Part shown: in pieces, positions 16,673 to 59,351 of the stretch | How positions within the stretch are numbered: position 1 is the stretch's first letter | How the letters are laid out: each line of letters begins with the position of its first letter | Assembly: GCA_001643675.2 (NCBI GenBank) | Contig: LSRY02000008.1 | Location: forward strand, 1,240,001 to 1,304,000 | Direction of reading: 5' to 3' | From: Monocercomonoides exilis PA203 | Taxonomy: Eukaryota; Protista; Preaxostyla | Length of the DNA: 64,000 nt | Notes under the pieces: generated by a model | Told to the model about the DNA's origin: nothing | The model's input: only the letters and a program-made list of their open reading frames with translations | Databases searched by the model: none | Translations under genes and position numbers: made by a program

Positions 16673-16759
16673 TCTGAGAGGCGAGTGCTGCTGGAACATC
16701 TTGCCAAGCATTGTTGCTATTTTGGGGTTATTGTGCTTGACCAAACGAAGAAATGCCAA

Positions 16760-22475: not shown

Positions 22476-24419
22476 ATGAGCAGAGGCGAAGGAAGAGAAG
22501 GAGATGGATATGGGGAAGGCATTGAAGGGAGTATTTCAGTGAGCGAATCACACTTCTCTTCTTTTTGTGTCTCATCAGCCCCATTCTTTTCTTCACCTTC
22601 CATTCCCCTTATATCCTTCTTCAAACTAATATTTTTCAACATCTCAACAGCAAATGAGGCATGCTCACCTTCAACCACAATGTCAACCCAAACATCATGT
22701 TTGATGAATAGTTGCTCCTTTTCGTCTGTTTGTGATGCATATGATGGCGGGATTGTCCCCTCCATCAACAATCCCTTGGCCTCTCTGACAGCCTCAAACA
22801 CTTCATTCATTGGGTGTTGTCGGACAAGAAACGTTGAATGCACTGGAACTGCAGAGGTACCATTGAAACCAGACAGACAAAACACAACGGATAATGGACA
22901 GAATACATTCACTTGGTGCGAATGGAGTGGATCGAGGACAACAGGAGAAAGTGACTCGTGGACTGATGGAGTGTCAAGCGGAGGGGCCATCTGCATGTAC
23001 AATCAGTCATCCGCCACTGTTTCAGTTTCGCATTGTGCATTCAATGAATGTGTCGCGCATTGGTGCGGTGGAGGTATAAATTGCTACAACATTAAATCTG
23101 TTGAGATTGTGAACAACAAATTTAATGCCTGCACCGCACAAGGCCATCGTGGGGGTGGAATACTAATTTATACGATTTCAACGTGTGTTCGAATCAGTGG
23201 ATGCGAATTCCAGAATTGTAAAGCAAATAATGGTGGAGGAGGACTTCTTCTTGAAAATTTTCAGGTTTCAGAAGGATGCATTCAAACAGAAAATGGAGAA
23301 GGGGAGAGTGCGTGTGTGTTTGACTGCCGCTTCACTTCATGTTCGGTTACAAATTATTATGGTGGAGGCATGCTTTGTCAATACGTTCCTGCTGCATTCA
23401 AAATGAGGAGCATTCAGTTTATTTCATGTTCAGCAACTGCATATGGAGGAGGATTGTATTTCAGACCAGAAAAAACAGAAATGCCAGATGATCAAATTTA
23501 TTGTTATTTTTTGTTCTTTCATGAATGCAAGTGCAGAACAACTTCAATTCCATACGGGCATGATGTTGAATACGTTGATTATTACAATGTCTATTTGAAT
23601 TCAGGAAATCCGTTCTTTGAATGTTATACCACAAACACTGATGAACAGAGAATGTGCTATGCATACAACTACTCGAATGCAAACACCTGGTATTTTCAGC
23701 ATACAGAAAAGTGGAATTGGCTGAAGAGAGGGATTCTCAATCGATTTGTGGCAGTGAGTGGAGGTGGTGAAGAAGAGTTATGTGGACTGGATGAGTCAAG
23801 TGCATGCCGAACCATTGGTGTTGCAGTTGAAAAGAGCGTGATCCAGGTGAGCCTGTCAGTCACGCTGATGGAAGGGAATCACACAAGCGAGACAACAACT
23901 ATTAATATTGAGACAAAGAAGATTTCAGTCATTGGGAGAGGCAAAGATAAGAGTTTGATTGGAACAGGGGCACTTTCAGCAGCAGAAGCGCTGTTCAGTG
24001 TTTCGACAGGTCACCTTGGTTTATTGCACATGAAGGTTGATTGCAACTCAAATGCAAATCCTTCTTCGCCGAGCGTGGTTGTGGTGTCTGATGGGGGCGG
24101 GTCACTCTCGTTGGAGGATGTTGTGATCACCACGAGTGTTTCTTCAGGAGAATATGTAATGTCGTCGTCAGTGTTTGTGGTGCCGCTGTCGCAGCTATCG
24201 ATGGTTGGTGTGGAGATAACAGATATGAATGTCTCAAAATCATTGTTCTCTGAGCCGGATCTCTCTTCTCCTTCTTCTTCTTCATTGTCGTCATTGTCAT
24301 TTTCATTGACTTCGTCTTCTTCATCTTCTTCGTCGACTTCATTGTCTTCATCGCCTCCTCCTGCACTGTTTTCGACTCTTCTTCCTTTTCTTCTCAGAAA
24401 GCAGTTTCACCAACGATAG
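22476..24419 (+). CDS. G2: Cys-rich beta-helix family protein, 647 aa, truncated at a poly-Ser tract
   Basis: Same motifs as G1 (2 aa differences). Homology to G7 stops after LFSEPDLSSSS...; the frame then runs into unrelated sequence. Confidence 0.8.
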   Translation: MSRGEGREGDGYGEGIEGSISVSESHFSSFCVSSAPFFSSPSIPLISFFKLIFFNISTANEACSPSTTMSTQTSCLMNSCSFSSVCDAYDGGIVPSINNPLASLTASNTSFIGCCRTRNVECTGTAEVPLKPDRQNTTDNGQNTFTWCEWSGSRTTGESDSWTDGVSSGGAICMYNQSSATVSVSHCAFNECVAHWCGGGINCYNIKSVEIVNNKFNACTAQGHRGGGILIYTISTCVRISGCEFQNCKANNGGGGLLLENFQVSEGCIQTENGEGESACVFDCRFTSCSVTNYYGGGMLCQYVPAAFKMRSIQFISCSATAYGGGLYFRPEKTEMPDDQIYCYFLFFHECKCRTTSIPYGHDVEYVDYYNVYLNSGNPFFECYTTNTDEQRMCYAYNYSNANTWYFQHTEKWNWLKRGILNRFVAVSGGGEEELCGLDESSACRTIGVAVEKSVIQVSLSVTLMEGNHTSETTTINIETKKISVIGRGKDKSLIGTGALSAAEALFSVSTGHLGLLHMKVDCNSNANPSSPSVVVVSDGGGSLSLEDVVITTSVSSGEYVMSSSVFVVPLSQLSMVGVEITDMNVSKSLFSEPDLSSPSSSSLSSLSFSLTSSSSSSSSTSLSSSPPPALFSTLLPFLLRKQFHQR

Positions 24420-25875
24420 TTGGCATTTCTTCGTTTGGTCAAGCACAATAACCCCAAAATAGCAACAATGCTTGGCAAGATGTTCCAGCAGCACTCGCCT
24501 CTCAGAGCCATCAAGTCAATCAAGTTCGTCAAGTCCGTCAAGTCCGTCAAGTCTGTCAAGTCTTTCAATAGCGCCAATGAAATCTATTGCCTGCCATTTT
24601 CTTTGATTCTGCACACATTGCTATTTCCGGCACACAACTGAAAGTCACAAATGGAAGGGCATAAAACACAGCGAATGTGAAGGAACTGAAGCAGACACAG
24701 CGAAGAAGAAACTTGCGATAGGCGTAGCAGCCGAAATGCTCATGCCACACTCGGCATCGCTAGTGCCCCTGCGTGCAGAGGGCAGATCGGCCGAATATAT
24801 CCCGAAGCGCAATTCCTATACACATCCACAATAGGTGCCTGAGAAGGAAAGTGATTCTTTCTTTCTTTTCTTTCTTTCTTTTTAATTCCGTTATTTTCAT
24901 AATTATCCGTTAAAAGGCACTCGCTCACTGGAACTTCTTTCTTGACTTTTAACTCTTTGGTTTACGAGTTGGTATGTTTGTTGCCACACACAAAGCAGAT
25001 CACGCAACCGCGCAACCAGCTGCTGATGATTTCGTAAGGAGAGGATGCAAAGAATGAGATTATTTTTGGCTCTTTGCAATGGCAGACCCAATAAGGGCTC
25101 GCATCTTGCCTCAAATTTAATTTATTGAAGTCTTATTCCCCCAGGAAACAAACAACGCAACAAAGACAGCTAAATGTAATAATAAATAAATAAACATGTA
25201 TTCGATAGAAGCAAACAAAATCGATTGTGAGTCGGAAGAAAACCAACGGACATATACGATATAATTTTCTTCACTTCGCAGTTAATGCGAATACACTTTA
25301 TAATGAAGCGCCAACATTGCGTGCACGAAGCCCAAAAACTGAACAAAAGTCCATGAATCGACAACTTCCATATTTCGAAAAATTCAATGAACACAAGGAT
25401 ATCGAGGCAATAAAGAGACGTGCAAAGAAGACACAGAAGGAAAAATATCGCAAAAAATGCTTAAAGGGAATTAAGAATTACAAGAGGCTCGTGACATCTT
25501 GAAAAATAAATTTTAAAAATTATCGTTCATCTTTTTGCATTTCCATTATTTTTTTTCCCCAATAATTGTTTACATAAAATAAATAAATGAAACTCAAAAC
25601 ATATTAAAAATTTTTGAGAGAAGAAGAAAGAGAAGATAGGAAAGAAAAACGGGAATAAAATTTCAAATAAAAATGTCGTTGAAAATATCAAGAAGAAGGA
25701 AAAAATAAAAAAAACATGAGCTATCAAAATGCAACTGCAAAGCAATCACTTTTCAATGCACAAATAATTCCAATGACCGCTCTCTCTCTCATTTCCTTTT
25801 CTATTTTTCTATTTTCTATTTTTTTTCTTTCTCTTTCTTTCTCTTTCTTTCTCTTTCTTTCTCTCTTTCTCTTTC

Positions 25876-25910
<35 letters not shown>

Positions 25911-26162
25911 TTCATTTTTTGTCTTTGCATTTGCACATATATTCTGCATTTTCTGTTCGGCAGAAAAAATAAAAAATAAAAAATTGAAAAATAATAAATA
26001 ATAAATAATAAATAAAAAATTAAAAAAATAATAATTCACATAATAAAATCCCAACACAAAGCAAACAAAACACCTTCTTCTCCTTTTCTGCCTTCCTCTT
26101 CCTCTACCCATTCATTTTCTTCCCATTCCTCTTCCTCTTCCTCCTCCTCCTCCTCTTCCCAT

Positions 26163-29100
26163 TCACCCTCTGCATTTCAAGCAGACAACAGGCATCTGCA
26201 TGCTCTTCCCGTTCACTCGCACCGTCTTGCGCGAAATCAACACACATGAAGAAGAAGAAGAAGAAAGAGAAGATGGAGATGATGATTGGAGGCTGTTTGA
26301 GAGGTCTTCGTCCAGCGCATAGTGTCTGCACTCCTCCATCGCCCCCATCAGACACGACTCGTGGTACATGTGCCCACACGCAAACCAGTACAGCTTGTCC
26401 GCCACCACCTTCGGAAGGCCTCTACACACACAGGAGGAGGAGGAGGAAGAAGAAGAAGAAAGAGAAGAAGAAGAATTTAATGAAGTATTTGATGAAGAAG
26501 ATGATAATCTCCCTTCATCTTGTACTGAACTCTTCACAAATGGATTCGGCTTCCCACTCTCAAACATTGCCCCATCCTCAAAATGCTCCACAAACACCAC
26601 ATATCCTTCCTCTCCGCCTCTTCCTTCTCTTTCTCCTGCTCCTCCACTCCCTCCTTCCTCCCCTCCTTCGCTCCCATATATCACACTTTCCTTGTATTTC
26701 CTCAGATATCTGCATTGCTCTTTTAATCCTCTTTCTCCTCCCCTTCTCCCTCCTCCTCCCCCTCCTCCTCCTCCTCCAATGCCTGCTCCACTCAATCCAT
26801 ACACTATCTCTCCACAATACGCACAACACCATTCCTTCTCCTCCCCCCATTTCCCTTCTCTTTCTCTCTCCCTCTCATCTCTTCCTCCTTCCCTTCCTCC
26901 CATTTCTCTTCCTCCTTCTCTCCTCACTCCATCCCCTCCAACATGTATCGCCTTCTTCCTCACCCACACCATCCTCTTCATCAGCTCCACGCTGTCCACT
27001 TTCCCTGCTGCTGCCGCCATCCGCAGCACCGAATGCCTCATCCTCCTCTCGTTCAGCATCCCAATCAGCGCTGGCTTCACCCCAACAATCACTTTCCCCG
27101 CAGGCAGAAGCTGCATCAGCACCTGCGGCTTCATCTTTGCCCCAGCACATGCAATGATCTGTGTCATCAACGGCGCATCTGCCTGCATCCGCGTCATCCC
27201 CAGCACACTCTGCGTTTCCAGCCCCAAGCGCACAAGATGGCTTATTCCTTGCCCTTGCCCTTTCCCTTTTCCTCCTCCTTCTCCTCCATCTCTTTCTCCT
27301 ATCCCTCCTCCAATTCCTCCAATTCCTCCAATTCCAACTCCTCCTCCTTCTCCTTCTTCGTCCTCTCCCATCCCTCTCCCTTCCTCCTCGCACAGCTCCA
27401 CTGCCTGCCCAACATCATGCACACTCAGCACCAGCGTGTCCATCGCCCGCATAAACAGCCCCATCTTCGCCTCAACAAGAGCAAAGCCCACTGCAAACTT
27501 CCTCTCCTCACACAAGCGCAGTGCTTTTGTCACACTGTAGTTTGACGCCTGCTGCAGAAAGGGAAGCAAGCCAGACGGTTTGTACTCGGCATAAAGCAAC
27601 GCCATGATGTCGCCGTATGCACGCACACGGGAAGAGTCAGAAAGGAGAACACGGTCGAGGTATTTGATGGCTCTTTCGGGGTGCTGGGGCATCAGGGAGG
27701 CATAGACATCGTTCACTTCAAAGGCAACGGAGGTGGTGAAGAAGGGGATGGAGCGAGAAGAAGAGGAAGAGGAAGAAGAGGAAGAAGAAGATGATAAGGG
27801 GGAAGGAGAAGAAGAAGGTGATGGTGATGATAAAGGAGAAGGAGAAAGAGAAGGAGAAGATATATCGCTATCAGATGACAATTGAGAAGAATTAGAAGAA
27901 TTAGAATGAGAAGAAGAATTCAAGTTATTCCCTCCTCCTCCACCTCCTCCACCACCACCACTTCCAAAGTTGAATGTGGTGGAAGTCGAATCCACCAGCA
28001 GATGCAGCGTCTTCTCTTCCGACATCTCCCACAGCTGATCCATCACCTTCTTCTCCAGCACAACTGCCTTCACTTCTTCCATGTGCTCCATCGCAAATGC
28101 AAAGACGTCTTTGTCTTTCTTCTCCAGCTTCACCAGAAACATCTCTTTGTGCTCGCCCAGCGTCTTGTGGAGGAACAGGCGTGTGTTCTGCACAGATCGC
28201 ATGAAGCCTTCCATCACCAACGACAAACACCCCATCATCTCCACAAACAGCCACGGCTTGGACTCAAACACCTCAAGTGCATCTGCTATGCTTTTGATGG
28301 CTTCATTGTTTTCTCCTTCTTCTCCTTCTCTTTCTCCTTCTTTTTCTTTCTTTCCTTTCTCTCCTTCTTCAATTGTATTATTCAATGGCATTGGTTGTTC
28401 TTCTCTTTCTCTTTCTTCCCTTCCTTCTTTTTCTCCTTCTCTTCTTCTTCTCCTCCTCTTCTCCAACACCCTCCACACCTCCCTCTCCTCCTCCTCCTTC
28501 TCCTTCTCATTCCTCGGCTGATTCACACACAGAGCAACAAGTTCTTTGAAATGGTTCATTGCCAAAATACATTTTTCCAGTTGAATTTGAAGGCGATTTG
28601 CTTCAGAGCCGATTAAGAGGACGATTTCGCGTGCAGCTTGGTATTCTCTGCGCTGGAGCTCTGTCATTGTCCAGAGGAAGCATTCAGTGAAGAAAGAGGA
28701 AGAGGAAGAAGAGGAAGAAGAGGAAGAAGAAAAAGATGAAGATGAATTAAAATCGGATTCTTCTTCTTCTTCTTCTTCATCTTCTTGTTTTCTTCTTCTT
28801 TCTTTTTCTTCACTTTCTTCATCATTATAATCTTCATCTTCATCATCATCATCATCTAAGTTCAAGAAATAATCTTCATTTTCTTCTTCTTCATCTTCTT
28901 TCTCATTCTCTTTCTCATTCTCTTTCTCTTTCTCTTCTTCATCTTTTCCATTTCGTTTTGTTGATGAAGATTCTATTGTATATTGTTGAGAAGAAGATGA
29001 TGATGAATTAGAAGAAGAATAAAGAGAAGAAGAAGAAGAAGAAGTTAATTTTTTCTTCGAATTCTTCTTTTTCCCTTTCGAAGCCTCAAAAAATGCAGAA

Positions 29101-29555
29101 AGAAGAGAAGAAGATGAAAAACCGGACAAAAATTGGTTTTGTTTGCGTTTGAGGGCAAAAGGGGAATATTTCTTGAGAAATGAATGAGGGAGAGAAAAAG
29201 AATAAGGAAGAGAAGAAGAAGAAGAAAAAGAAGAAGAAGAAGAAGAAGAAGAAGAAGAAGAAGAAGAAAAAGAAGAAGAAGAAGAAGAATTTGATGAAAT
29301 ATTAGAAGAATTATTAAAAGATGAAGAAGAAGAAGAAGAAGAAGAAGAAAGAGAAGAGGATGATGATGATGATGAACTTGTCGAAGCTGAAGAAGAAAGA
29401 AAAGTTGAAATCGAGAAAAATATCAATGATGTTAATTTTGATGTAACAGAAAAAAAAAAGTGTGATAAAAATTGTATATAAAATAAGTGATATTTGTTTA
29501 AAATAAATTTATCAATCGAAAATATTTGCCGGTAAAAACATTTCATTCGTTCCAC
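26163..29555 (-). pseudogene. VPS41: Inverted, 5'-truncated duplicate of VPS41 (C-terminal ~1050 aa, no WD40) fused to an unrelated in-frame N-terminus; 1130-aa open frame
   Basis: Identical to the Vps41 C-terminal half from SSSSLPYSFSLPH to CLKCRG; homology ends in a poly-Ser tract at ~29376. Confidence 0.85.
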
Positions 29556-31161
29556 TTCCTATTCTACTCGTGGTGATCACAACATCCTCCAATGAGAGTG
29601 ACCCACCCCCATCAGACACCACAACCACACTCGACGAAGAAGGATTTATATATGAGTTGCAATCAACTTTCATGTGTAATAAACCAAGGTGACCTGTTGA
29701 CACGCTGAATAGCGTTCCTACAGATAAAAGTGCTCCTGTTCTAATCGAACTCTCCGTCCTCCCTTTCCCAATGACTGAAATCTTCTTTTCTCCAATCTCA
29801 ATTGTTGTTGCCTCGCTTGTGTGATTCCCGTCCAGCAGCGTGATTGTCAAGCTAATCTGCACCTCGCACATCTCAAACGCTTTCTTCACTGTTTTACACG
29901 GATTTGACTCATTTGTCCCACAAAGTGGAGATGAATCATTTCCATTCACTGACACATAAATCGTCTTGTCCTTCAGCCAATCCCACTTTTCCGTGTGCTG
30001 ATATGTCCAACTCCCTGAACTCGACAAATTATATCCATAACATACTCTCTGGCCATCTGTGTTTGTTGTGTAACATTCATGGAACGGATTTCCTGAAGTC
30101 GAAATGACATTGTAATAATCATAATATATCACATCATGCCCATATGGATTGGAGGTTGTTCTGCATTTGCATTCATGGAAGAACAAAAAATAACAATAAA
30201 ATTTATCATTTGGCGCTGTTGCTCGATTTGGATACAATTCCAACCCTCCACCATATCCATTTGCTGTACATGAAATAAATTGAATGCTCCTCATTTTGAA
30301 CTGACTTGGAACAGTCACACAACGCATGCCTCCACCTCCATTGCTTGTCAATGAGCATGAAGTGAAGCAGCAGTCAAACACACACGCACTCTCCCCTCCC
30401 TCATTTTCTGTTTCAATGCAATCAGTTCCTGAAACATTAAAATAATCAAGATAAAGTCCTCCTCCAGCATTATTTGCTTTACAATTCTGGAATTCACATC
30501 CACTGATCCGAACACATGATGAAATCGTATAAACGAACACCCCTCCTCCATATCGATTTTGCGCATTACATGAATTGAACGTGTTATTCACAATCTCAAC
30601 CGATTTAATATTATAGCAACTAATACCTCCACCGCACCAATGCGCGACACATTCCTTGAATGCACAATGCGAAACTGAAACAGCGGCCGACGATTGACTG
30701 TGCATGCAGATGGCCCCTCCGCTTGACACTCCATCAGTCCACGAGTCACTTTCTCCTGTTGTCCTCGATCCGTTCCATTCGCACCAAGTGAATGAATTTG
30801 CTCCATTGAATGTTTCATTCTGTCTGTCTGGCTTCAATGGAACTTCTGCAGTTCCAGTGCATTCAACATTCCTTGTTCGATAACATCCAGTGAATGAGGT
30901 GTTTGAAGCTGTCAGAGAGGCCAAGGGATTGTTGATGGAGGGGACAATCCCGCCATCATATGCATCACAAACAGACGAAAAGGAGCAACTATTCATCAAA
31001 CATGATGTTTGGGATGACGTAGTGGTTGAAGGTGAGCATGCCTCATTTGCTGTTGAGATGTTGAAAAAAGTGAGTCTGGAGAGGGATATTAGGGGTATTG
31101 AAGGGGATGAAAGGAATGGGGCTGATGAGACACAAAAAGAAGAAAAGTGTGATTCGCTCAC
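29512..31161 (-). CDS. G3: Cys-rich beta-helix family protein, 549 aa, truncated at both ends (GTG start)
   Basis: Family motifs as in G1; ends shortly after SLSLEDVVITTS. Confidence 0.75.
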   Translation of the reverse strand: MSESHFSSFCVSSAPFLSSPSIPLISLSRLTFFNISTANEACSPSTTTSSQTSCLMNSCSFSSVCDAYDGGIVPSINNPLASLTASNTSFTGCYRTRNVECTGTAEVPLKPDRQNETFNGANSFTWCEWNGSRTTGESDSWTDGVSSGGAICMHSQSSAAVSVSHCAFKECVAHWCGGGISCYNIKSVEIVNNTFNSCNAQNRYGGGVFVYTISSCVRISGCEFQNCKANNAGGGLYLDYFNVSGTDCIETENEGGESACVFDCCFTSCSLTSNGGGGMRCVTVPSQFKMRSIQFISCTANGYGGGLELYPNRATAPNDKFYCYFLFFHECKCRTTSNPYGHDVIYYDYYNVISTSGNPFHECYTTNTDGQRVCYGYNLSSSGSWTYQHTEKWDWLKDKTIYVSVNGNDSSPLCGTNESNPCKTVKKAFEMCEVQISLTITLLDGNHTSEATTIEIGEKKISVIGKGRTESSIRTGALLSVGTLFSVSTGHLGLLHMKVDCNSYINPSSSSVVVVSDGGGSLSLEDVVITTSRIGSGTNEMFLPANIFD

Positions 31162-34100
31162 AGAAACTCTTCATTTTCCTATTTCTTCTTCCGCTTCTGA
31201 AATGCATATTCCCAAGAGAAAAGCATCTTTTCCCCTTTGTTCCGCTAAATGGAAACGGCATTCAAATGTTCTTCGTCATTAACTTTCCTTAAAATCCCCT
31301 TTTCTTCTGGGATCAAATTCTGCCTTCTCTCCTCATTCTATTCACTTCCATCGCTTTTGAAGGCTTATACAAACGTCCCTATTATCAATTGAAAAACATA
31401 TTTAATATTACAAAAATCTTAAAAATATACAAAAATATTAAATTGCAAAAAAATTTCAATAATAAATATGAAAAGCCCCGTACCATTTTCTTTTCACCAT
31501 CTTCCGCTTCTTCTTCTCAATTTTTCTTGAATTTCTTCTTCTGCTGCATCATCAATTCCTTGATCTCATTTTTGACTTTTAACAAGATTCATCGTATATG
31601 CCTTCCAAAACCTTCAAAAAAATATATCTTCTTCTCTTTTCCTTTCATTTATATTTTGCGTCCGCTCACTCCACCAAACGCCCTCCAATTATTATCTCCA
31701 GATTTCTTTTAATGCATCCAACATCCCCTCTTGACATATTCCTTGTTCATTCATTGCCATTGAGCAATCCTGCAAAAATCCTAATTTCATAAATAATAAT
31801 ATGTGAAGAAAAATTAAAATAATTTTAAAAAAAATGCAAACCTATATCTTTCACAATAACCACCTTTTGCTGACTTTTTCTTTCTTCTTCTTCTTCTTTT
31901 TAAAATATTAACAAAAGCTCAATCCTCTGTTCTGTTTCCACCCAAATAACCTCCACAAATTCCATTCCATAAAAAAACAAGCAATGAAGAAGATTCCATC
32001 CAAAGAATCCCTTCCTATCTCTTGCCAAAATCTTCTTCTTCTTCTCTCCATTTCCCCCCAAAACAACAACAATACCATCCCACCAAATATCACAATCCCT
32101 GTCTCCCCAGCTCCCATTCCCCTTCTTCCAACCAATAAAAATAAATATCTCCATTTCTTTGTATGTCTCTGGCGCAAAACATCTTCTCGTGGTCAGCACC
32201 TCATCTCGATCCATCCCTGTCACGAATCCATCTCCACACCTCTAATGCAAAGTGCCAGTGCTGATGTTCCTTCTTCCCGTCTTCCTCTGCCTCCGCCTCC
32301 AACACTTGCCCCGCAAATGAGAGGCGCGACCAAACTGTCCTTTCAATAAAAAATAAAAAAGATAAAAAAATATCTCTCACTTTTTTTCCCCTTCAACCCC
32401 GCTTCTCTTTCTTATCAAACATAAGCCCACAAAAACTTTTCCACCTTGCTCCGCCTCATATGAACTCCTCCTCTCTCTCTGCATTTGAAAATAAAAAAAA
32501 ATCTCCTCCACATATCTCTCCATTTCTCGTCCTCTCCTCCAATAAATATATTCCATTCGCTTCACCCATCTTCTGCCCTTCTTATCTTCCCTCTTATCCC
32601 ACCTCCAACACATCAAATTCCTTTTCTCAAATAATAAACACAATTCCCACACCTTCCAACTCACAAAAATCGAAAAACAATCCCTCCAAACCTCATCCCA
32701 ATCCATCTCCCAAACATCCATTTTGCCTCTGAAATATCACAAAAATACCTCTTTTCCACAAAAAATACCTTTAATCGTTCCATTCCCTCTCTAAACCCTG
32801 CCTCCTCCAAGAACTCAACTCCTTCACCCCACACCACAAATCCATCCTTTTACAACCACATTGTCTTCATATGCCCATTCAGCCACGGCACATCGAGTTG
32901 TGCTCCTTTTCTTTTGTGGCTCTTATTCGTTATGGAAAATGATCAAGAAATGTCAAACGCTCAGAAACTGTCAACGGGGTCAGATTCCGAAGCTAAAACA
33001 AAGGCAGATTGACTAAGTGAAATATTTCCAGTGAAAAGGTTGAGTATTACAAAAGAATATCTGTTTGATGGAAGATGAAATTGTTCATTTTGATTGTTGG
33101 AATACTGGGGAGCAACAATATTTTCGATGGAAATGCAGAATTTTCAATGTATGTATTTTATATTTTTCTGTTGATTGTGAAGATATTTCTATCCGTATCC
33201 TCTCCAAAGTCGTGATTCAGACAACTTATAAAAAATGGACAATCTATTCTTTGCAGAGCAGAACAGCGAGGAAGGGAGCCAAATGATACCTTACAAATAT
33301 ATTAGAGCCTGAATGTATTTTGTCATAAATATTTAAGTGACTTATTATAGACTCAGCATGCGCGATGGATAGAAATTTGATGAAAAATGAATTTTAATGG
33401 AGCAGAAATCAACGGGGTCGAAAGACATCCAAGGCCAAAAGGAAGAACAGCCAAATTCAATGAAAAGGGAACGTTTTTAAAAAGAGGAAGAGGACATTTT
33501 CATTTTTAAGTTTGTTGGGGAGATTGGGGCAAATGACTGAAACAGGAGATTAGAGACAGCTGCAGCAGAACAAGGTGCCTTTCTTGGGATGAGAAGGGCA
33601 AGACATTGCTTTTATGGACTGAGGGGAGCGATGGAACTGGATTAGATTACTTGGGTTGAGAGGCGAAAATACGAGAAAAACGGACAGTTTGGCGTTATAC
33701 AAGCAGCTGAGGAAAATTACAGGCAAAATGGATTTGAGTCATTTTGCCTTTGTCTTCAGCCTTATGTCATCGAAGGGTTATCCATTGAATCAGAGAACGA
33801 GGCCGTGATGCTGAGAATATCTTCTGACAGAAGGTATATAGTATTCAAACTTGACAATAACATCGCATTCACCATCTTCATCATCTTCATCTCTATCATC
33901 GCCATCATCGCTGTCATTATCTTCTTCTTCATTAAAAATTTTATTGAAGCATTTTTATTATTTGTGTATTATTTGAGTGGAATCAGCGCCAAGAATTGGA
34001 AAAAAGCAAATTTTTTGAAGCAGAACAGAATCGATTTCATTGATGTTGAGATTGGCAGCGGAAACAGAAAAGGCGAATTTTGTTGGCAGAAAAGAACAAT

Positions 34101-49115: not shown

Positions 49116-50410
49116 TTTGATGGAACATGAACGATTTATTTTTTCTTTGAAAAAAAAAGAGTATTCGAATTATTTTGCCATTTTCGATGTTTTGCAGAAA
49201 CAAAAAGTGGACAAGTTTCTTTGTTGAATCCTTCTTTTTTTTTTTCAATGAAAAAATTCATATGATTTTTATTTTTTCATTCATTAGCCAACTGCTTTTG
49301 AATGATTTTTTAGACTACAATAGTTATTAAAAATATATATCGATCTTTTCTTTTTCATTCTTTTTTTTTCAAATGAGATTTTCACAACATTTTTTTATTA
49401 CAAAATGAAAAAATCAAACAGTTCCCTTGTTTGAAAAGAAATATGAAATTTCGGAACAAACTGTTGAAGAACTTCAAAAATGATTTGTTGATGAACAAAC
49501 AAACAAATGGATGAATGAATGGATGAAAAACGCCAGACAATAGTATTTTCACAGCAACTGATGAATGAAAAAGGAAAACGATAACTTTTTTTTTGTATTT
49601 TTGTCAAATAATATCAAACTCTTCTGATTTATCAATCATTCATTTTCATTTTGACAGGGAGAAAAAATGAAAATAATTATTCATTGAGAAATCAGATGAA
49701 TTAGAAAATGGGTTTTATCATGATTTTGATGAGAAACATTTATCAAAATGAAAAATATGAATCAAAAAATAAATGAAATCTTTTTTATTAGAAATGATTA
49801 TTTTTCATTGATATTTAACTATATATCCTTTTTTATATCAACCATAAGGCACTCATTGGCTTTCAAAATCATGATTTCAAAATTAATCACCCATATTGAT
49901 TTTTTCCGAATTGAATGTTTGTTTTTTGTTTATTTTGTTTTCTTCTTCTTTTTTATCAAAACAAATTATTCTTTCACAAAACGATGAAAAAGAAGTTTTT
50001 GAAATTCATCAACACCGATTCATTTGTTCTTTTTATGTTTTTGTTTTCCAATTTCAATTTTGATAGTTTATTTTGATGAGGGAGGTTGTTCATCTTATCT
50101 CACAAGTTTTCTGTCAAAAACGTCGATTTGAAATTGAGATTGGGACACTTTGAAATGGACACTTGAAAGTGATAACAACATTGTGACAGTTCATTATTTG
50201 ACTTTTTCTTTCTCAAATAAAAAGTCTTATTAATAATTGAAAAGCCTATTTCACTTCTATTGAATATTCACAAATCAATCTCGAAAAGCTGTGTTATTAT
50301 CCATTCTCCAAATCATTTTCTGATCTCAAAAATCATTTTCCATATTCATCTCGATTATTACTTTTCATTTGGTTAAAAAAATAAGGATTCGGTTTTCTAT
50401 CTTATTTTAT

Positions 50411-50651
50411 AATGATTTATTTTTGAAATATCTCAAACGCGAAATTTTCATGCTATGTCGAACGTTTCTTATTCTTTTATCATTTTCACTTTTAAACTTT
50501 TTATTAAATCGAAAATAAAAAGTTTTGTTGAAATAATGAATATTCTATTTCTATCAACTTGAGTTGTTTCATGAGTTTGATCAAAAACCTTTGAAATAAT
50601 ACAAATAACATTTTGATTTCTTCATTAGCGACTTTTCAGAAAGAATAATGA
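50411..50651. mobile_element. Degenerate ~241-bp MITE-like element at the centre of P3
   Basis: Minus strand 50647-50623 reads TATTCTTTCTGAAAAGTCGCTAATG, nearly matching the TIR consensus. The symmetric left position reads ATTTATTTTTGAAATATCTCAAACG. Confidence 0.65.
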
Positions 50652-51971
50652 TATAATTGAGATAATAAATCAAATCCACAAATATAGAACCAAATGAAAA
50701 GAAATAATCGAGATGAATATGGAAAATGATTTGTGAGATCAGAAAATGATTTGGAGAATGGATAATCACGCGGCTTTTCGAGATTGATTTGTGAATATTC
50801 AATAGAAGTGAAATAGGCTTGTCAATTATTAATAAGACTTTATATTTGAGAAAGAAAAAGTCAAATAATGAACTGTCACAATGTTGTTATCACTTTCAAG
50901 TGTCCATTTCAAAGTGTCCCAATCTCAATTTCAAATCGACGTTTTTGACAGAAAACTTGTGAGATAAGATGAACAACCTCCCTCATCAAAATAAACTATC
51001 AAAATTGAAATTGGAAAACAAAAACATAAAAAGAACAAATGAATCGGTGTTGATGAATTTCAAAAACTTCTTTTTCATCGTTTTGTGAAAGAATAATTTG
51101 TTTTGATAAAAAAGAAGAAGAAAACAAAATAAACAAAAAACAAACATTCAATTCGGAAAAAATCAATATGGGTGATTAATTTTGAAATCATGATTTTGAA
51201 AGCCAATGAGTGCCTTATGGTTGATATAAAAAAGGATATATAGTTAAATATCAATGAAAAATAATCATTTCTAATAAAAAAGATTTCATTTATTTTTTGA
51301 TTCATATTTTTCATTTTGATAAATGTTTCTCATCAAAATCATGATAAAACCCATTTTCTAATTCCTCTGATTTCTCAATGAATAATTATTTTCATTTTTT
51401 CTCCCTGTCAAAATGAAAATGAATGATTGATAAATCAGAAGAGTTTGATATTATTTGACAAAAATACAAAAAAAAAGTTATCGTTTTCCTTTTTCATTCA
51501 TCAGTTGCTGTGAAAATGCTCTTGTCTGGTAATTTTCATCCTTTCCATATTTTCATCCATTCATCCATTCATTCATCCATTTGCTTGTTTGTTCATCAAC
51601 AAATCATTTTTGAAGTTCTTCAACAGTTTGTTCCGAAATTTCATATTTCTTTTCAAACAAGGGAACTGTTTGATTTTTTCATTTTGTAATAAAAAAATGT
51701 TGTGAAAATCTCATTTGAAAAAAAAAGAATAAAAAAGAAAAGATCGATATATATTTTTAATAACTATTGTAGTCTAAAAAATCATTCAAAAGCAGTTGGC
51801 TAATGAATGAAAAAATAAAAATCATATGAATTTTTTCATTGAAAAAAAAAAAGAAGGATTCAACAAAGAAACTTGTCCACTTTTTGTTTCTGCAAAACAT
51901 CGAAAATGGCAAAATAATTCGAATACTCTTTTTTTTTCAAAGAAAAAATAAATCGTTCATGTTCCATCAAA

Positions 51972-54299
51972 TTACTCACCTTTCTTCCTTTCCTTTTCAC
52001 AAATAAACCCGATTTTCTGCTCCTCGATAAAACAGGAGATTTCGAGTTTTGCAGCAGTGATGGTGCTTATTTTATGTGGGTTGCACGAGTTGCAGCAAAA
52101 CAGAAACAAAATCGCAACGCACTTATGATTTTTTATTCTTCCCTCCAATTTCACATGTGACCAAAAATTCATCTCAAAATCGCCCTTCCCAAACATACAA
52201 CCACTCTGCCCCCCTTCTGTTCTCGTGCTCATCATCCCGAACGTCTCTCCTGCCTTCACACTCTTTGCCACAACCACCCCATCTCCTTCAGTCAACTTCA
52301 CATTCGTCACCTTCACATTCGCCAGCACGCTATCTCCTGATGCTGTGGCTGTCAGATACAATGCAGATGACGACAATGACGACAATGAAGAAGAAGTAGA
52401 AGAAGAAGAAGAAGAGAGATCCGGCTCAGAGAACAATGATTTTGAGACATTCATATCTGTTATCTCCACATCAACCATCGACAGCTGCGACAGCGGCACC
52501 ACAAACACTGACGACGACATCACATAGTCTCCTGTTTTACTCGTGGTGATCACAACATCCTCCAACGAGAGTGACCCACCCCCATCAGACACCACAACCA
52601 CGCTCGGCGAAGAAGGATTTGCATTTGAGTTGCAATCAACCTTCATGTGCAATAAACCAAGGTGACCTGTCGTCACACTGAACAGCGCTCCAGTTGATGA
52701 AAGGGCTCCTGTTCCAATCGAACTTTTATCTTTGCCTTTCCCAATGACCGAAATCTTCTTTGTCTCAATATTAATAGTTGTTGTCTCGCTCGTGTGATTC
52801 CCGTCCATCAGCGTGACTGACAGGCTCACCTGGATCACGCTCTTTTCAACTGCAACACCAATGGTTCGGCATGCACTTGACTCATCCAGTCCACATAACT
52901 CTTCTTCACCACCTCCACTCACTGCCACAAATCGGTTGAGAATCCCTCTCTTCAGCCAATCCTTCTTATCTGTGTGCTGATATGTCCAACCCTTAGAATC
53001 CGTATAATTATATCCGTAGCACACTCTCTGGTCATCTGTGTTTGTGGTGTAACATTCATAGAACGGATTATTTTGAGATAAATATACACTGTAGTAATCA
53101 TAATACATCACATCATGCCCATATGGAGTGGCTGCAGAGCATTTGCATTCATGGAAGAACAAAAAATAACAATAAATTACATCTTTCTGTGATGTTGCTC
53201 GATTTGGATGTAAACACAATCCTCCACCTTCTTGCCGTGCAGAACATGAAAAAAACTGAATGCTCCTCATTTTGAATTGCGTTGCAGGAACAGTGGCACA
53301 ACGCATGCCCCCACCTTGCGAATTTGTAACTGAGCATGAAGTGAAACAGCAGTCAAACACACACGCACTTTCCCCTTCTCCATTTTCTTCTCCAATGCAA
53401 TCTGTTCCTGAAACCTGAAAATTGTCGAGATAAAGTCCTCCTCCCCAGCCATAAGAAGAACATTTCTGAAACTCACATCCGCTGATCCGAACACATGTTG
53501 AAATCGTATAAATGCACATCCCTCCACCAGCCCAAGTTTTTGCGGTGCATGAGTTGAACGTGTTGTTAATAATCTCAACCGATTTGATTTTTGCACACAT
53601 GACCCCCCCTCCATCATAATAGGCATAGCAGTCGTTGAATGAGCAGTGCTTAATAGAAACAGTGGCATTTGATTGGCCATACATGCAGATTGCCCCGCCA
53701 CTCGATATTCCATCTGAAATAGAATCGCTTGTTCCGGTCGTACTCGATCCATTCCATTCACACCAAATAAATGAATTAGCTCCATTGAATGTTTCATTCT
53801 GTCTGTCTGGCTTCAATGGAACTTCTGCAGTTCCTTCGCAAACAACATTTCTTGTCCGATAACATCCCACAAACGAGGTGTTTGAGGCAGTTAAAGAAGC
53901 CAAGGGATTGTTGAGTGAAGGTACAATTCCGCCATCATATGCATCATTAACAGACAAGAATGAGCAACTATTCATAAAACTTGATGTTTGGGTTGACGTA
54001 ATTGTTGGAGATGGGCAATCTGAAGATGCTGTTGAAATATTGAAAAATGTCAAATGAAAGAGGGATATAAGGGGAATGGAAGGTGAAAAGAAGAATGGGG
54101 AAGAAGATGAGAAACGCGATTCATTCACTGAAATTCTTTCTTCAACGCAACCTTCTCTTCTCAACGCCTTTAGCACAACGTTGCAAAATATCTCAATATG
54201 GCTGTGCTCATTTTTCTGCTTCTTCTTCCCCTTCTGATCATCATGGCTTCCCCACATCTCTTTTTTACCTTTTGTTTCAATTTTCTGCTTTTTTTCCAT
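51972..54299 (-). CDS. G8: palindromic twin of G7, 775 aa (TGH vs TGQ)
   Basis: ORF track; one amino-acid difference from G7. Confidence 0.8.
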   Translation of the reverse strand: MEKKQKIETKGKKEMWGSHDDQKGKKKQKNEHSHIEIFCNVVLKALRREGCVEERISVNESRFSSSSPFFFSPSIPLISLFHLTFFNISTASSDCPSPTITSTQTSSFMNSCSFLSVNDAYDGGIVPSLNNPLASLTASNTSFVGCYRTRNVVCEGTAEVPLKPDRQNETFNGANSFIWCEWNGSSTTGTSDSISDGISSGGAICMYGQSNATVSIKHCSFNDCYAYYDGGGVMCAKIKSVEIINNTFNSCTAKTWAGGGMCIYTISTCVRISGCEFQKCSSYGWGGGLYLDNFQVSGTDCIGEENGEGESACVFDCCFTSCSVTNSQGGGMRCATVPATQFKMRSIQFFSCSARQEGGGLCLHPNRATSQKDVIYCYFLFFHECKCSAATPYGHDVMYYDYYSVYLSQNNPFYECYTTNTDDQRVCYGYNYTDSKGWTYQHTDKKDWLKRGILNRFVAVSGGGEEELCGLDESSACRTIGVAVEKSVIQVSLSVTLMDGNHTSETTTINIETKKISVIGKGKDKSSIGTGALSSTGALFSVTTGHLGLLHMKVDCNSNANPSSPSVVVVSDGGGSLSLEDVVITTSKTGDYVMSSSVFVVPLSQLSMVDVEITDMNVSKSLFSEPDLSSSSSSTSSSLSSLSSSALYLTATASGDSVLANVKVTNVKLTEGDGVVVAKSVKAGETFGMMSTRTEGGQSGCMFGKGDFEMNFWSHVKLEGRIKNHKCVAILFLFCCNSCNPHKISTITAAKLEISCFIEEQKIGFICEKERKKGE

Positions 54300-54484
54300 A
54301 TTCCATTCGCATTCATCGCTTTTGAATATTCATGCAAAAGTCCCTATTATCAATTAAAAATATAAAGAAAAAATATAAAAAATATTTAAAATGTAATACA
54401 AAATATGAAAAACCAGTTCCATTTTCTTTTTGCAATCTTCTTCCTTTTCTCCTCCTCCTTCTTCTTCTCGAATTTTTGTCAAAA

Positions 54485-57400
54485 TTCTTCTTCAGCCATT
54501 TCTTCAATTTTCCGATTATTCTTTTCTGTTGATTCCCCTTCTTCTTTTTCAAAATTCAACATAAACCTTCAAAGCCCTCCTCTTCCATTCATTTCATTTA
54601 ATACCTCTGGCTCATTCTTCGATATTCTCAAAAAAATTGTGTTGCCTGATTTCTGAAATGCATCCAATGTGCTCTTTTCCCCATGTTCATTCATTCCCTG
54701 AAAACATCCTTCCATAAATCTTAATCCCTCAAAAATATAAAATAAATATGTGAAAAATTGGAGAAAAAAAATAATACAAAACAAACTCTGAAATATATTT
54801 ATTGCCAATCTTCACACACTTTCTTCTTCTTCAAAAGCCTCTCAAATTATTGTTCTTTTCTGCCAACAAAATTCGCCTTTTCTGTTTCCGCTGCCAATCT
54901 CAACATCAATGAAATCGATTCTGTTCTGCTTCAAAAAATTTGCTTTTTTCCAATTCTTGGCGCTGATTCCACTCAAATAATACACAAATAATAAAAATGC
55001 TTCAATAAAATTTTTAATGAAGAAGAAGATAATGACAGCGATGATGGCGATGATAGAGATGAAGATGATGAAGATGGTGAATGCGATGTTATTGTCAAGT
55101 TTGAATACTATATACCTTCTGTCAGAAGATATTCTCAGCATCACGGCCTCGTTCTCTGATTCAATGGATAACCCTTCGATGACATAAGGCTGAAGACAAA
55201 GGCAAAATGACTCAAATCCATTTTGCCTGTAATTTTCCTCAGCTGCTTGTATAACGCCAAACTGTCCGTTTTTCTCGTATTTTCGCCTCTCAACCCAAGT
55301 AATCTAATCCAGTTCCATCGCTCCCCTCAGTCCATAAAAGCAATGTCTTGCCCTTCTCATCCCAAGAAAGGCACCTTGTTCTGCTGCAGCTGTCTCTAAT
55401 CTCCTGTTTCAGTCATTTGCCCCAATCTCCCCAACAAACTTAAAAATGAAAATGTCCTCTTCCTCTTTTTAAAAACGTTCCCTTTTCATTGAATTTGGCT
55501 GTTCTTCCTTTTGGCCTTGGATGTCTTTCGACCCCGTTGATTTCTGCTCCATTAAAATTCATTTTTCATCAAATTTCTATCCATCGCGCATGCTGAGTCT
55601 ATAATAAGTCACTTAAATATTTATGACAAAATACATTCAGGCTCTAATATATTTGTAAGGTATCATTTGGCTCCCTTCCTCGCTGTTCTGCTCTGCAAAG
55701 AATAGATTGTCCATTTTTTATAAGTTGTCTGAATCACGACTTTGGAGAGGATACGGATAGAAATATCTTCACAATCAACAGAAAAATATAAAATACATAC
55801 ATTGAAAATTCTGCATTTCCATCGAAAATATTGTTGCTCCCCAGTATTCCAACAATCAAAATGAACAATTTCATCTTCCATCAAACAGATATTCTTTTGT
55901 AATACTCAACCTTTTCACTGGAAATATTTCACTTAGTCAATCTGCCTTTGTTTTAGCTTCGGAATCTGACCCCGTTGACAGTTTCTGAGCGTTTGACATT
56001 TCTTGATCATTTTCCATAACGAATAAGAGCCACAAAAGAAAAGGAGCACAACTCGATGTGCCGTGGCTGAATGGGCATATGAAGACAATGTGGTTGTAAA
56101 AGGATGGATTTGTGGTGTGGGGTGAAGGAGTTGAGTTCTTGGAGGAGGCAGGGTTTAGAGAGGGAATGGAACGATTAAAGGTATTTTTTGTGGAAAAGAG
56201 GTATTTTTGTGATATTTCAGAGGCAAAATGGATGTTTGGGAGATGGATTGGGATGAGGTTTGGAGGGATTGTTTTTTCGATTTTTGTGAGTTGGAAGGTG
56301 TGGGAATTGTGTTTATTATTTGAGAAAAGGAATTTGATGTGTTGGAGGTGGGATAAGAGGGAAGATAAGAAGGGCAGAAGATGGGTGAAGCGAATGGAAT
56401 ATATTTATTGGAGGAGAGGACGAGAAATGGAGAGATATGTGGAGGAGATTTTTTTTTATTTTCAAATGCAGAGAGAGAGGAGGAGTTCATATGAGGCGGA
56501 GCAAGGTGGAAAAGTTTTTGTGGGCTTATGTTTGATAAGAAAGAGAAGCGGGGTTGAAGGGGAAAAAAAAGTGAGAGATATTTTTTTATCTTTTTTTATT
56601 TTTTATTGAAAGGACAGTTTGGTCGCGCCTCTCATTTGCGGGGCAAGTGTTGGAGGCGGAGGCAGAGGAAGACGGGAAGAAGGAACATCAGCACTGGCAC
56701 TTTGCATTAGAGGTGTGGAGATGGATTCGTGACAGGGATGGATCGAGATGAGGTGCTGACCACGAGAAGATGTTTTGCGCCAGAGACATACAAAGAAATG
56801 GAGATATTTATTTTTATTGGTTGGAAGAAGGGGAATGGGAGCTGGGGAGACAGGGATTGTGATATTTGGTGGGATGGTATTGTTGTTGTTTTGGGGGGAA
56901 ATGGAGAGAAGAAGAAGAAGATTTTGGCAAGAGATAGGAAGGGATTCTTTGGATGGAATCTTCTTCATTGCTTGTTTTTTTATGGAATGGAATTTGTGGA
57001 GGTTATTTGGGTGGAAACAGAACAGAGGATTGAGCTTTTGTTAATATTTTAAAAAGAAGAAGAAGAAGAAAGAAAAAGTCAGCAAAAGGTGGTTATTGTG
57101 AAAGATATAGGTTTGCATTTTTTTTAAAATTATTTTAATTTTTCTTCACATATTATTATTTATGAAATTAGGATTTTTGCAGGATTGCTCAATGGCAATG
57201 AATGAACAAGGAATATGTCAAGAGGGGATGTTGGATGCATTAAAAGAAATCTGGAGATAATAATTGGAGGGCGTTTGGTGGAGTGAGCGGACGCAAAATA
57301 TAAATGAAAGGAAAAGAGAAGAAGATATATTTTTTTGAAGGTTTTGGAAGGCATATACGATGAATCTTGTTAAAAGTCAAAAATGAGATCAAGGAATTGA

Positions 57401-57818
57401 TGATGCAGCAGAAGAAGAAATTCAAGAAAAATTGAGAAGAAGAAGCGGAAGATGGTGAAAAGAAAATGGTACGGGGCTTTTCATATTTATTATTGAAATT
57501 TTTTTGCAATTTAATATTTTTGTATATTTTTAAGATTTTTGTAATATTAAATATGTTTTTCAATTGATAATAGGGACGTTTGTATAAGCCTTCAAAAGCG
57601 ATGGAAGTGAATAGAATGAGGAGAGAAGGCAGAATTTGATCCCAGAAGAAAAGGGGATTTTAAGGAAAGTTAATGACGAAGAACATTTGAATGCCGTTTC
57701 CATTTAGCGGAACAAAGGGAAAAAGATGCTTTTCTCTTGGGAATATGCATTTCAGAAGCGGAAGAAGAAATAGGAAAATGAAGAGTTTCTGTGAGCGAAT
57801 CACACTTTTCTTCTTTTT
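54485..57818 (-). repeat. 3.3-kb inter-gene cassette, copy C (inverted)
   Basis: Reverse complement of copies A and B. Confidence 0.95.
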
Positions 57819-59351
57819 TCCAATTTTATCTCATCACATTCCATATCTCTTGTTTCACTCTCCAAATAAACATTTTTCAATATTTCAACAGCATCTTCAG
57901 ATTATTCACCTTCAACCACTACGTCATCCCAAACCACATGCCTGATGAACAGCTGCCCTTTCTCATCAGTGTGTGATGCATATGATGGCGGAATTGTTCC
58001 CTCTCTGAACAATCCATTGGTTTCTCTGACTGCCTCAAACACTTCATTCGTTGGGTGTTGTCGGACAAGAAATGTTGAATGCACTGGAACTGAAACTAAT
58101 AAGAAACAGCCAGGGAGGCAGAACGAAACATTCAATGGAGCAAACTCATTCACTTGGTGTGAATGGAGCGGATCGAAGGCTACTGGAGAAGTTAGCTCAT
58201 ACGCCGATGGCTCTTCGAATGGTGGAGCAATTTGCATGTTCAGCTTATCGTCTGGAACGCTTTCAGTGAAATGCTGTTCGTTCAGCGGATGTGAAGCGTA
58301 TTATTCGGGAGGAGGCATTCATTGCTACAACATCAAATCGGTTGATATTACAAATAACACATTCGACTCATGCACTGCTCGAACATGGATTGGAGGAGGG
58401 ATGTGCATTTTAACAATTACAATTTGTGTTCGGATCAGCGGATGTGAATTCCAGAATTGCAAAGCATATAGCCATGGAGGAGGACTTTATCTTAATGATT
58501 TCAAGGTTTCAGGAACAGGATGCATTGGAGAAGAAAATGGAGGAGGGGAGAGTGCGTGTGTGTTTGACTGCAGTTTCACTTCATGTTCGGTTACAAATTA
58601 TTATGGTGGAGGCATGCGTTGTTACAATGTTCCTAATCAATTCAAAATGAGGAGCATTCAGTTTATTTCATGTTCTGCGATGTCAACTGGAGGAGGATTA
58701 CATTTGGAGCCATACAAACAAACAGCACCATCTGACGTGATTTATTGTTATTTCCTTTTCTTCCATGAATGCAAGTGCAGAACGGCTTCAATTCCATATG
58801 GGCATGACATAATCTATGCAGATTATTATAATGTATTTTTGAATTCAGGCAATCCGTTCTATGAATGTTACACAACGAACACAGATGAGAAGAGAATGTG
58901 CTATGCGTATAATTACTCGAATGCAGGTGCCTGGACATATAACCAAACATCAAAAAAGAATTGGCTGAAGGATAAGATGATTTATGTGTCAGTGAATGGG
59001 ATTGATTCATATGAGCTGTGTGGGGCAAATGAATCAAATCCGTGTCTAACAGTGAAGAAGGCATTCGAGATGTGTGAAATACAGATAAGCTTGGCAATCA
59101 CACTGATGGATGGGAATCACACAAGCGAGACAGCAACAATTGATATTGGGGAAAAGAAGGTTTCAATCATTGGGACGGGCAAAGATAAAAGTTCGATTGG
59201 AACAGGAGCACTTTCATCTACAGGAGCGTTGTTCAGTCTGACGAGTGGCCATTTGGGAATGAGCCATTTGAAGATTGATTGCAACTCAGCTGCGGGAACT
59301 TCGCCTAGTGTTGTTGTTGTATTTTATGAAAGAAAAAATATTTTCACTTGA
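57791..59351 (+). CDS. G9: Cys-rich beta-helix family protein (ORF 57945-59351, 468 aa); upstream family sequence frameshifted at ~57820
   Basis: VSESHFSSF at 57791 is followed by a deletion/frameshift relative to G3; family motifs resume in the 57945 frame; ends after SPSVVVV. Confidence 0.75.

Follow-up and report, generated by a model that had tools for sequence, protein, structure and literature searches.

Head-only gene copies at the locus

The window analysed here is a stretch of 64,000 nucleotides of the Monocercomonoides exilis PA203 genome (contig LSRY02000008.1, positions 1,240,001 to 1,304,000), in which we found nine copies of a repeat head (G1 to G9), three palindromes and several shared sequence tracts (Table 1). 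No signal peptide, stalk or membrane anchor was present in any of the nine copies, in spite of the 27-29 cysteines carried by each head, and neither a signal peptide nor a transmembrane segment was found among 69 gene models of the arrays, which hold at least 86 heads. The first methionine of the fragments falls at random positions and their frames run into arbitrary tails, while fragment ends are ragged, with no conserved boundary repeat found at them, and the arrays contain neither kinase tails nor receptor N-termini. Judged from the sequence, the window genes are cut-down copies of the binding head of receptors of ~3,000 aa, and not surface adhesins themselves. Alternative genetic codes gave frames no better than the standard reading, and upstream exons as a source of signal peptides appear unlikely, the spacers having no similarity to 120 long proteins and the RNA contigs no splice joints with canonical ends.

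Table 1. Features of the window, with positions counted from its first nucleotide.
Feature	Position	Strand	Basis
G1, head-only fragment, palindromic twin of G2	16760-18760	-	
G2, head-only fragment, 666-codon frame, equivalent to residues ~203-835 of full-length receptors	22419-24419	+	
G2 rungs 2-6 (T3 loop starts 23058, 23139, 23226, 23349, 23436)	23058-23444	+	
G3, head-only fragment	29512-31170	-	
G4, head-only fragment	34713-36350	+	
G5, head-only fragment	36876-38507	+	
G6, chimera: first 307 bp (5') as G9, rest as G5; crossover near 42915	41711-43221	-	
G6 frameshift of one base in a homopolymer near 42336-42341; may be a sequencing error			
G7, longest head-only fragment, extends to receptor residue ~890	46758-49115	+	
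G8, palindromic twin of G7	51972-54329	-	
G9, head-only fragment	57870-59351	+	
Decayed remnant of receptor cytoplasmic region, 3' of G2	24673-25091	+	weak match, E 5e-6
RNA-library contig, 199 nt, 0 mismatches, spans G5/G6 truncation point and stop	41622-41820	.	
Palindrome P1, 76-bp centre 20552-20627	11779-29376	.	
Palindrome P2	36887-43319	.	
Palindrome P3, arms near-identical except G6 vs G9, which differ as a block	41699-59391	.	
Non-coding spacer, 2.74 kb, separating divergent fragments	31350-34090	.	
333-bp tract, G2 identical to G4 (34942-35274); genes otherwise ~76% alike	22672-23004	+	gene conversion
Tract of ~186 bp (approximate limits) in rungs 2-3, common to G9 and array-edge full-length receptor C80:1149496-1158360 with 2 mismatches	58270-58460	+	

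Head-only genes could conceivably be working proteins, whether binders that are soluble or cytosolic or else decoys or co-receptors, in the manner of Brassica SLG beside SRK. They are in fact annotated as genes, their frames are open and under purifying selection, an RNA contig lies over a truncation point, and one copy on contig C53 (L015) begins with a signal-peptide-like stretch. The missing signal peptides, random starts and arbitrary tails described above, however, together with an RNA depth that is low and contigs that carry neither strand nor expression level, make such a role very unlikely.

As a correction to the earlier note on this DNA, G1 pairs with G2 and G7 with G8 as twins across palindromes, and G6 proved to be a frameshifted chimera of G9 and G5. 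The arms of P1 differ by 2 substitutions and 3 indels over ~8.3 kb (99.9% identity), and the non-coding spacer recurs in near-identical copies at 43489-46228 and 54859-57602 and is mostly restricted to arrays. Arms so alike, and the homopolymer frameshift of G6, would suit the view that palindromes and chimeric copies are artefacts of long-read assembly that inflate the repertoire. We consider this highly improbable, as the libraries, according to the passages on them in PMC8767320, were ligation-based and made from unamplified DNA, as the short-read word depth of the P2 arms (327-514) is, by what is a soft measure, about twice that of the unique centre (151-176), and as the 55 groove signatures reported below do not rely on twins.

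Full-length receptors with the same head

At least 117 long gene models of 1,500-4,300 aa are located outside the window, and single-frame full-length genes of 2,700-3,700 aa bear the same head. By hydropathy only, a TM-like helix is found in 102 of the 117 long models and a signal peptide in 53-63, and the architecture of full-length members comprises a signal peptide, an ectodomain, a single TM and a cytoplasmic kinase-like domain. The kinase match of the tails covers the C-lobe only; among 100 tails there was no DFG-like motif and a single Gly loop, and the 28 matches to an HRD-like pattern were, in the tails inspected, HSDL at a non-catalytic position, so that by motif content the receptor tail is a pseudokinase. 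Close relatives outside M. exilis were absent among the matches listed by length-limited protein searches. In passages of PMC6759080 and PMC8767320, a tyrosine kinase-like family is described as larger than any other gene family of M. exilis; it accounts for 320 of the 332 tyrosine kinases predicted and overlaps unclassified repeats, and it is very likely that our receptors make up a large part of it. Neither the ectodomain and its variable face nor the lack of catalytic motifs, the arrays of heads or gene conversion is described in those passages.

Predicted fold and variable face of the head

The parallel beta-helix proposed in the earlier note is upheld, as a prediction and in right-handed form, by the agreement of an AF2 model of the head (pTM 0.71; pLDDT 84-94 across residues 111-200) with VIA matches. 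Among the 50 entries that VIA matched at Z 13-18, almost all are beta-helices by description, the top ones without exception. Foldseek gave no match at E<=0.001, PF13229 matched under the cut-off, and no solved structure related by sequence was found; a Preaxostyla cluster in the Atlas (TM 0.71) may be the receptor family itself.

Resemblance to the chlamydial Pmp adhesins had also been suggested, and rung geometry is indeed common to the heads and to chlamydial and trichomonad Pmps (PMC11166332; PMC6701047), with Fxx(N/C), 4-6 residues and GGx-hydrophobic on a beta-helix. These Pmps also share surface location with the full-length M. exilis members, and those of trichomonads have a C-terminal TM. 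Each head, however, contains 9-10 FxxC and 4-5 GGG(I/L/V/M/F) motifs in place of the Pmp type (0 FxxN, 1-2 GGA(I/L/V)), and neither fragments nor full-length proteins gave a Pfam match to the PF02415 repeat, the Pmp middle domain or the autotransporter barrel. Motif counts and the lack of a PF02415 or autotransporter match rule out membership of the Pmp family, from which the receptors also differ by their kinase-like tail and their diversification through conversion with fragment arrays.

The loop motifs listed for rungs 2-6 of six distinct copies (G2, G3, G4, G5, G7 and G9) were recovered in 30 of 30 cases. The scaffold, which had been called invariant, is strongly conserved but not literally so, and the loops are variable as stated, although their variants come from recurring block alleles common to copies and not from independent point changes. 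In an alignment of 53-57 family heads, mean entropy reached 2.17 bits for T3 loops and 2.11 bits for outward PB1 residues, compared with 0.76 for the remaining outward positions of the rungs and 0.32 for core positions; of the 20 rung sites that vary most, 15 belong to T3 or outward PB1 (3.5 expected, p=1.1e-9). Tyr accounts for 24% of residues at these variable sites, and Tyr, Trp and His together for 28-40%, against 3% on other faces. The 55 copies compared carry 55 distinct groove signatures, independent of palindromic twins, and a large, diversified, aromatic-rich repertoire is present. A diversity-generating retroelement was rejected, the majority base at variable sites being T in 26, A in 18, G in 5 and C in 4 and the variation residing in block alleles; no reverse transcriptase was found among the long window frames scanned.

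Assigned from secondary structure and the published Pmp register, the variable residues are predicted to lie in T3, outward PB1 and T1, that is, on one face, as had been proposed. In solved beta-helix enzymes, the substrate site lies on the T3/PB1 face (PMC10992409). Pectin-lyase-like enzymes and phage tailspikes (5mqp, 6w4q, 7c7d) have their fold in common with the heads, but identity is ~10% and the groove face of the heads has no invariant acidic or basic residue, and because of this we infer binding rather than catalysis. The fold neighbours and the Tyr-rich groove free of such residues are also the reason why, by analogy and at somewhat less than even odds, we tentatively favour bacterial surface glycans as the ligand.

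Selection and decay

The expectation of dN/dS above 1 on the variable face failed for these sites as a class, as omega was 0.6-0.8 in the groove, 0.2 on other outward faces and 0.06-0.1 in the core (site-wise estimates came from our own grid codon model with fixed kappa and are rough). Sites with dN/dS above 1 at P>0.9 dropped from 26 on one tree to 14 and 2 on segment trees, that is, to as few as 2 once recombination was allowed for, and only position 261 (rung 6 T3) appeared in all three; class-wide positive selection on the groove is therefore unsupported after segment trees. Among the outcomes that the earlier note had named as counting against it, dN/dS at or below 1 was found, while scattered variable sites or a fold other than a beta-helix were not.

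Alternatively, the arrays might be birth-and-death debris of the receptor family, kept readable passively because damage is overwritten by conversion from working receptors and between array copies, with loop variability reflecting relaxed constraint on exposed residues. The groove omega, the ragged ends and the 69 array models free of signal peptide or TM would agree with it, as would receptor-receptor exchange being as frequent as receptor-array exchange. We nonetheless regard it as unlikely. The head alone was kept in dozens of independent truncations, whereas the tail remnant beside G2 (34-37% identity to the receptor cytoplasmic region) has acquired a stop and a frame change; the other outward faces, moreover, differ sharply from the groove in both omega and aromatic content, and dispersed orphans do decay. 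Stops were found in 0 of 86 array heads vs 4 of 16 dispersed non-full-length copies (p=4e-4), among the best 112 of 1,901 candidates, a scoring that favours intact copies. Omega of private mutations was 0.23 in arrays, 0.22 in receptors and 0.52 in orphans, the array vs orphan ratio alone not being significant (p=0.19).

Segmental gene conversion

Tests at the DNA level were based on 57 heads and 9 full-length genes. Identical runs of at least 100 bp occurred in 21 pairs under 90% identity and in none of the codon permutations, per-segment trees were ~6,600 lnL units better than one tree, and the correlation of distances, 0.3-0.7 within a segment, was 0.1-0.4 between neighbours and ~0 past two rungs. 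Significant tracts in common with fragments were seen in 7 of the 9 full-length genes, most of them with several mismatches, and the C80 receptor is tiled by pieces that match fragments from three contigs. Stalk-sister receptors are 87-93% identical from +800 on and 55-63% at +100 to +400, and in the C8/C14 comparison fourfold-site divergence is 2-12% in the stalk (+777 to +1477) vs 38-53% in the head. Head replacement is thus seen in receptors, with either arrays or other receptors as possible donors; stalks are mosaic too, at a coarser scale. The idea that receptors take their rungs from arrays alone is not supported, as 90 of 679 receptor rungs matched other receptors and 76 of 679 matched array fragments. 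By these sequence comparisons, the main diversifier is segmental, rung-scale gene conversion. Rung-scale conversion had no place in the earlier note.

Silent cassettes that convert one or a few expression sites within a clone for evasion of host immunity, as in the programmed antigenic variation of Borrelia vls or trypanosome VSG, would explain why stop-free cassettes spanning just the variable region lie in dense arrays, with full-length genes flanking them on C80 and C53, and share nearly exact tracts with receptors. Against this stand more than 100 dispersed full-length genes instead of one expression site, cassettes ~74% identical to each other at the DNA level vs ~90% in vls (PMC11499132), several mismatches in most tracts, the absence of boundary repeats, some transcription, and a signalling tail that suits sensing better than a coat; we therefore hold this reading to be distinctly improbable.

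We put at roughly 60% the probability that the copies belong to a receptor-head family that forms one pool for rung-wise conversion, with the arrays as allele reservoir. The repeats would form the ligand-binding head at the N-terminus of giant receptor pseudokinases that span the membrane once. These receptors consist of a signal peptide, a beta-helix head with a ladder of cysteines, a long stalk, a TM and a kinase-like tail without catalytic motifs. Conversion would swap patches of one to three rungs of T3 and the outward PB1/T1 face within a pool made up of full-length receptors and dense, palindrome-rich head-only arrays, the latter serving as a store of rung alleles that is drawn on over evolutionary time and not in a programmed manner. 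Surface display, binding and the donor role of fragments are what we infer. A bolder possibility, to which we give little credence, is that arrays rewrite the paratope-like face so quickly that clones diversify inside one host. An amitochondriate, unicellular eukaryote would then have an anticipatory receptor system built on a beta-helix and comparable to lamprey VLR or to the conversion of chicken Ig.

Relation to other systems and significance

Pathogen coats and vertebrate immune receptors are known to diversify by conversion from partial copies, instances being the VSG mosaics of trypanosomes and the pseudo-V donors of chicken Ig; in the literature searched, we found no such report for a family of signalling receptors in a protist, nor for a beta-helix scaffold. 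Borrelia vlsE/vlsS (PMC11499132) likewise has arrays of partial copies limited to a variable region in which variable segments alternate with invariant ones, as well as segmental conversion and few stops, but M. exilis has more than 100 full-length genes whose product is a receptor, and exchange there may be neither rapid nor unidirectional. Brassica SRK/SLG (PMC4031107) also pairs a receptor kinase with an ectodomain-only paralogue and shows gene conversion in the recognition domain; there, however, each haplotype has one pair, SLG is secreted and conversion is thought to preserve specificity, whereas M. exilis has dozens of signal-less fragments and near-free shuffling. EhTMKB1 of Entamoeba histolytica, another gut protist (PMC2880585), is an expanded receptor-kinase family with most copies truncated (6 of 35 full length), but it has a different ectodomain, copies at least 95% identical and mostly 5'-truncated, and an active kinase, and a conversion-shuffled binding face is unreported there.

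Our results would identify a large share of the biggest gene family annotated in M. exilis as receptor pseudokinases with a recombining binding tip, and would also account for some of the 29 Mb of repeats that are unclassified in its genome. The way in which a commensal protist of the gut distinguishes bacteria or partners could thereby become testable, and the head might offer binder design a natural Cys-laddered scaffold with interchangeable rungs.

Receptor family and window content

Our results point, with a probability of about 0.6, to a receptor-pseudokinase family whose ligand-binding face would be reshuffled by gene conversion, one rung (beta-helix turn) of the N-terminal head at a time, from a pool that takes in dedicated head-only arrays as a slow reservoir. 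No published description of such a system was found in the literature searched. The genome searched comprised 82,301,135 bases in 101 contigs, the nanopore assembly of the oxymonad Monocercomonoides exilis being reported as 82.3 Mbp in 101 contigs, from unamplified DNA and ligation libraries (PMC8767320). Members dispersed through the genome each consist of one frame of 2,700-3,700 codons, in most with a hydrophobic N-terminus. The head starts at about residue 260-300 and is followed by a long stalk, a single TM helix and a tail on the cytoplasmic side. A TM-like helix is found in 102 of the at least 117 long receptor models. Because the tail matches PF07714 and solved TKL/TK domains over the C-lobe only, and none of 100 tails carries a DFG-like motif, it is, as judged from sequence, a pseudokinase. 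Tyrosine kinase-like proteins are named as the largest M. exilis family in passages of PMC6759080, and these passages hold no description of the ectodomain. One full-length receptor on contig C8 (L031:1235-9913) ends in a tail without any kinase match, unlike the kinase-like tails of its stalk sisters and not related to them; receptors thus exchange tails too.

The window holds kinesin, VPS41 and tyrosine recombinase genes and nine copies of the Cys-rich GGG/FxxC head (G1-G9), all nine within three large palindromes (P1-P3); homologues found by protein search carry MONOS names. G1 and G2 form one twin pair, G7 and G8 another, and G6 is a chimera of G9 and G5, which leaves six distinct copies, those compared in the earlier note. 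Kinesin and VPS41 break up the fragment array at this point.

Features of the window other than the head copies
Feature	Position	Strand	Remarks
Kinesin motor gene	1-8415	-	Frame >2,800 codons, runs off window, very Glu-rich
VPS41, full gene	8897-15022
VPS41, 3'-half copy	26163-29555	-	Made by palindrome P1; start in Ser-rich low-complexity stretch near 11779
Array-associated non-coding spacer	31350-34090, 43489-46228, 54859-57602		Three copies
Tyrosine recombinase	62753-63778	-	PF00589, E 3.6e-8; similar to YR of DIRS-type retroelements

The variable face

The 30 loop motifs reported in the earlier note were all present in the six copies, and its beta-helix was borne out by prediction (right-handed, parallel, pTM 0.71). 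The head model has its structural neighbours among glycan-active beta-helices and tailspikes, with a best Z of 18.0 (rmsd 3.9, 254 aligned), while Foldseek returned no match at E<=0.001. The heads do not belong to the chlamydial Pmp adhesins; in the Pmp register, GGA ends turn T3 before strand PB1, and FxxN spans PB3 to T3 (PMC11166332). We enlarged the set to 57 heads, drawn from the window, 50 loci and nine full-length genes, and assigned site classes from motif register alone, which agree with the secondary structure of the predicted model. Mean entropy was 2.17 bits at T3, 2.11 at outward PB1, 1.17 at T1, 0.76 at the remaining outward positions and 0.32 for core residues. Of the 20 rung sites with the highest variability, 15 belonged to T3 or outward PB1 (p=1.1e-9), with Tyr at 24% there, in keeping with the aromatic-rich loops described earlier, and the groove signature (T3 loops plus outward PB1/T1 residues) differed in each of 55 non-redundant heads. 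The variable residues would thus lie on one face, a placement drawn from register and fold rather than measured coordinates. In pectate lyases a site between PB1 and T3 is linked to substrate binding (PMC10992409). The likeliest ligands of the heads would be bacterial surface glycans.

Gene conversion and selection

Heads are about 74% identical at the DNA level; 21 pairs nevertheless have unbroken stretches of 100-405 bp in common (333 bases in G2 and G4), such as never arose in 30 codon permutations. Pairwise-distance correlation is 0.1-0.4 for adjacent segments and about zero beyond two rungs. Seven of nine full-length genes share significant tracts with fragments; a receptor at the array edge on C80 matches G9 over 186 bp with two mismatches, and other pieces of it match fragments on contigs C53 and C71. 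In receptor pairs with stalks 88-93% identical, heads are mostly just 50-68% identical (random-pair median 57%), the dip of stalk sisters falling between +100 and +400, counted from where the head begins, within the fragment-covered stretch. In the C8/C14 pair the stalk (+777 to +1477) has diverged by 2-12% at fourfold sites and the head by 38-53%, which indicates that heads are replaced by recombination, not by amino-acid-changing mutation alone. Receptor rungs match other receptors (90/679) about equally often as fragments (76/679), and stalks also recombine; transfer between receptors and fragments could have run in either direction. Programmed antigenic variation, to which the diverse grooves might be put down, seems improbable; the system works in a manner like vls/VSG cassettes and SLG/SRK, a likeness that does not establish membership.

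A site-wise dN/dS check, as proposed earlier, did not support positive selection on the variable face as a class. With an in-house simplified model and segment-specific trees, the groove had an omega of about 0.6-0.8, as against 0.21-0.29 for the remaining outward faces and 0.06-0.10 for the core. A single tree gave 26 sites with posterior >0.9 for omega >1; segment trees gave 14 and 2. Within this simplified model, a naive single-tree test would overstate positive selection.

Head-only arrays

Head-only fragments make up 86 of the best 112 genome matches, on C80, C53 and C71, where close kinase tails occur at array edges only. The window copies cover receptor residues ~200-300 to 740-890 only, have no signal peptide and end at arbitrary stops, and nothing in the fragments corresponds to the first 100 residues of the C7-type receptor. 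Such truncation would suit passively maintained debris, which we nonetheless consider unlikely: among top-scoring copies, in-frame stops occur in 0/86 array heads vs 4/16 dispersed non-full-length copies (p=4e-4), and omega for private mutations at conserved columns is 0.23 in array fragments, 0.22 in receptors and 0.52 in dispersed orphans (array vs orphan difference not significant alone). Next to G2 lies a decayed remnant of the cytoplasmic region (weak match), while the G2 head is intact. Array fragments are, by these sequence measures, conserved.

That head-only proteins are themselves functional is more doubtful still. Neither a signal-peptide-like start nor a TM was seen in any of 69 annotated array models; one array copy, L015 (C53:201617-205690), has an in-frame signal-peptide-like start ~190 residues ahead of the head and could encode a secreted head-only protein. 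Its longer N-terminal piece is common to several C53 copies. No RNA-library contig covered 39810-41009, but one of 199 nt, of unreadable strand and level, spans the G5/G6 truncation point with no mismatched base, which makes transcription of at least some fragments probable.

An assembly artefact, which palindromes might suggest, is very improbable: with short-read contigs placed on 39810-45799, DNA word depth in the P2 arm was about twice that of its unique centre (soft evidence), as expected for a real palindrome. Opposite-strand gene pairs with identical scores, a few kb apart, are many on C80, C53, C71, C8, C9, C28, C40, C51, C55 and C88, which suggests that large palindromes occur throughout the M. 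exilis genome.

A 2.7-kb non-coding spacer accompanies the fragments; its two halves have opposite strand skews, and its appearance is that of divergent promoters or of genes that have decayed. Within it, GT..AG, AT-rich intron-like stretches lie immediately upstream of G3, G4, G6 and G9. At least eight more short head-only models, belonging to a subtype that is more distant, lie on a contig of 810,774 bases and possibly form a fourth array. A rat gut metagenome (run X9) holds a 0.10 share of the words of 34700-38600, which could come from a related oxymonad.
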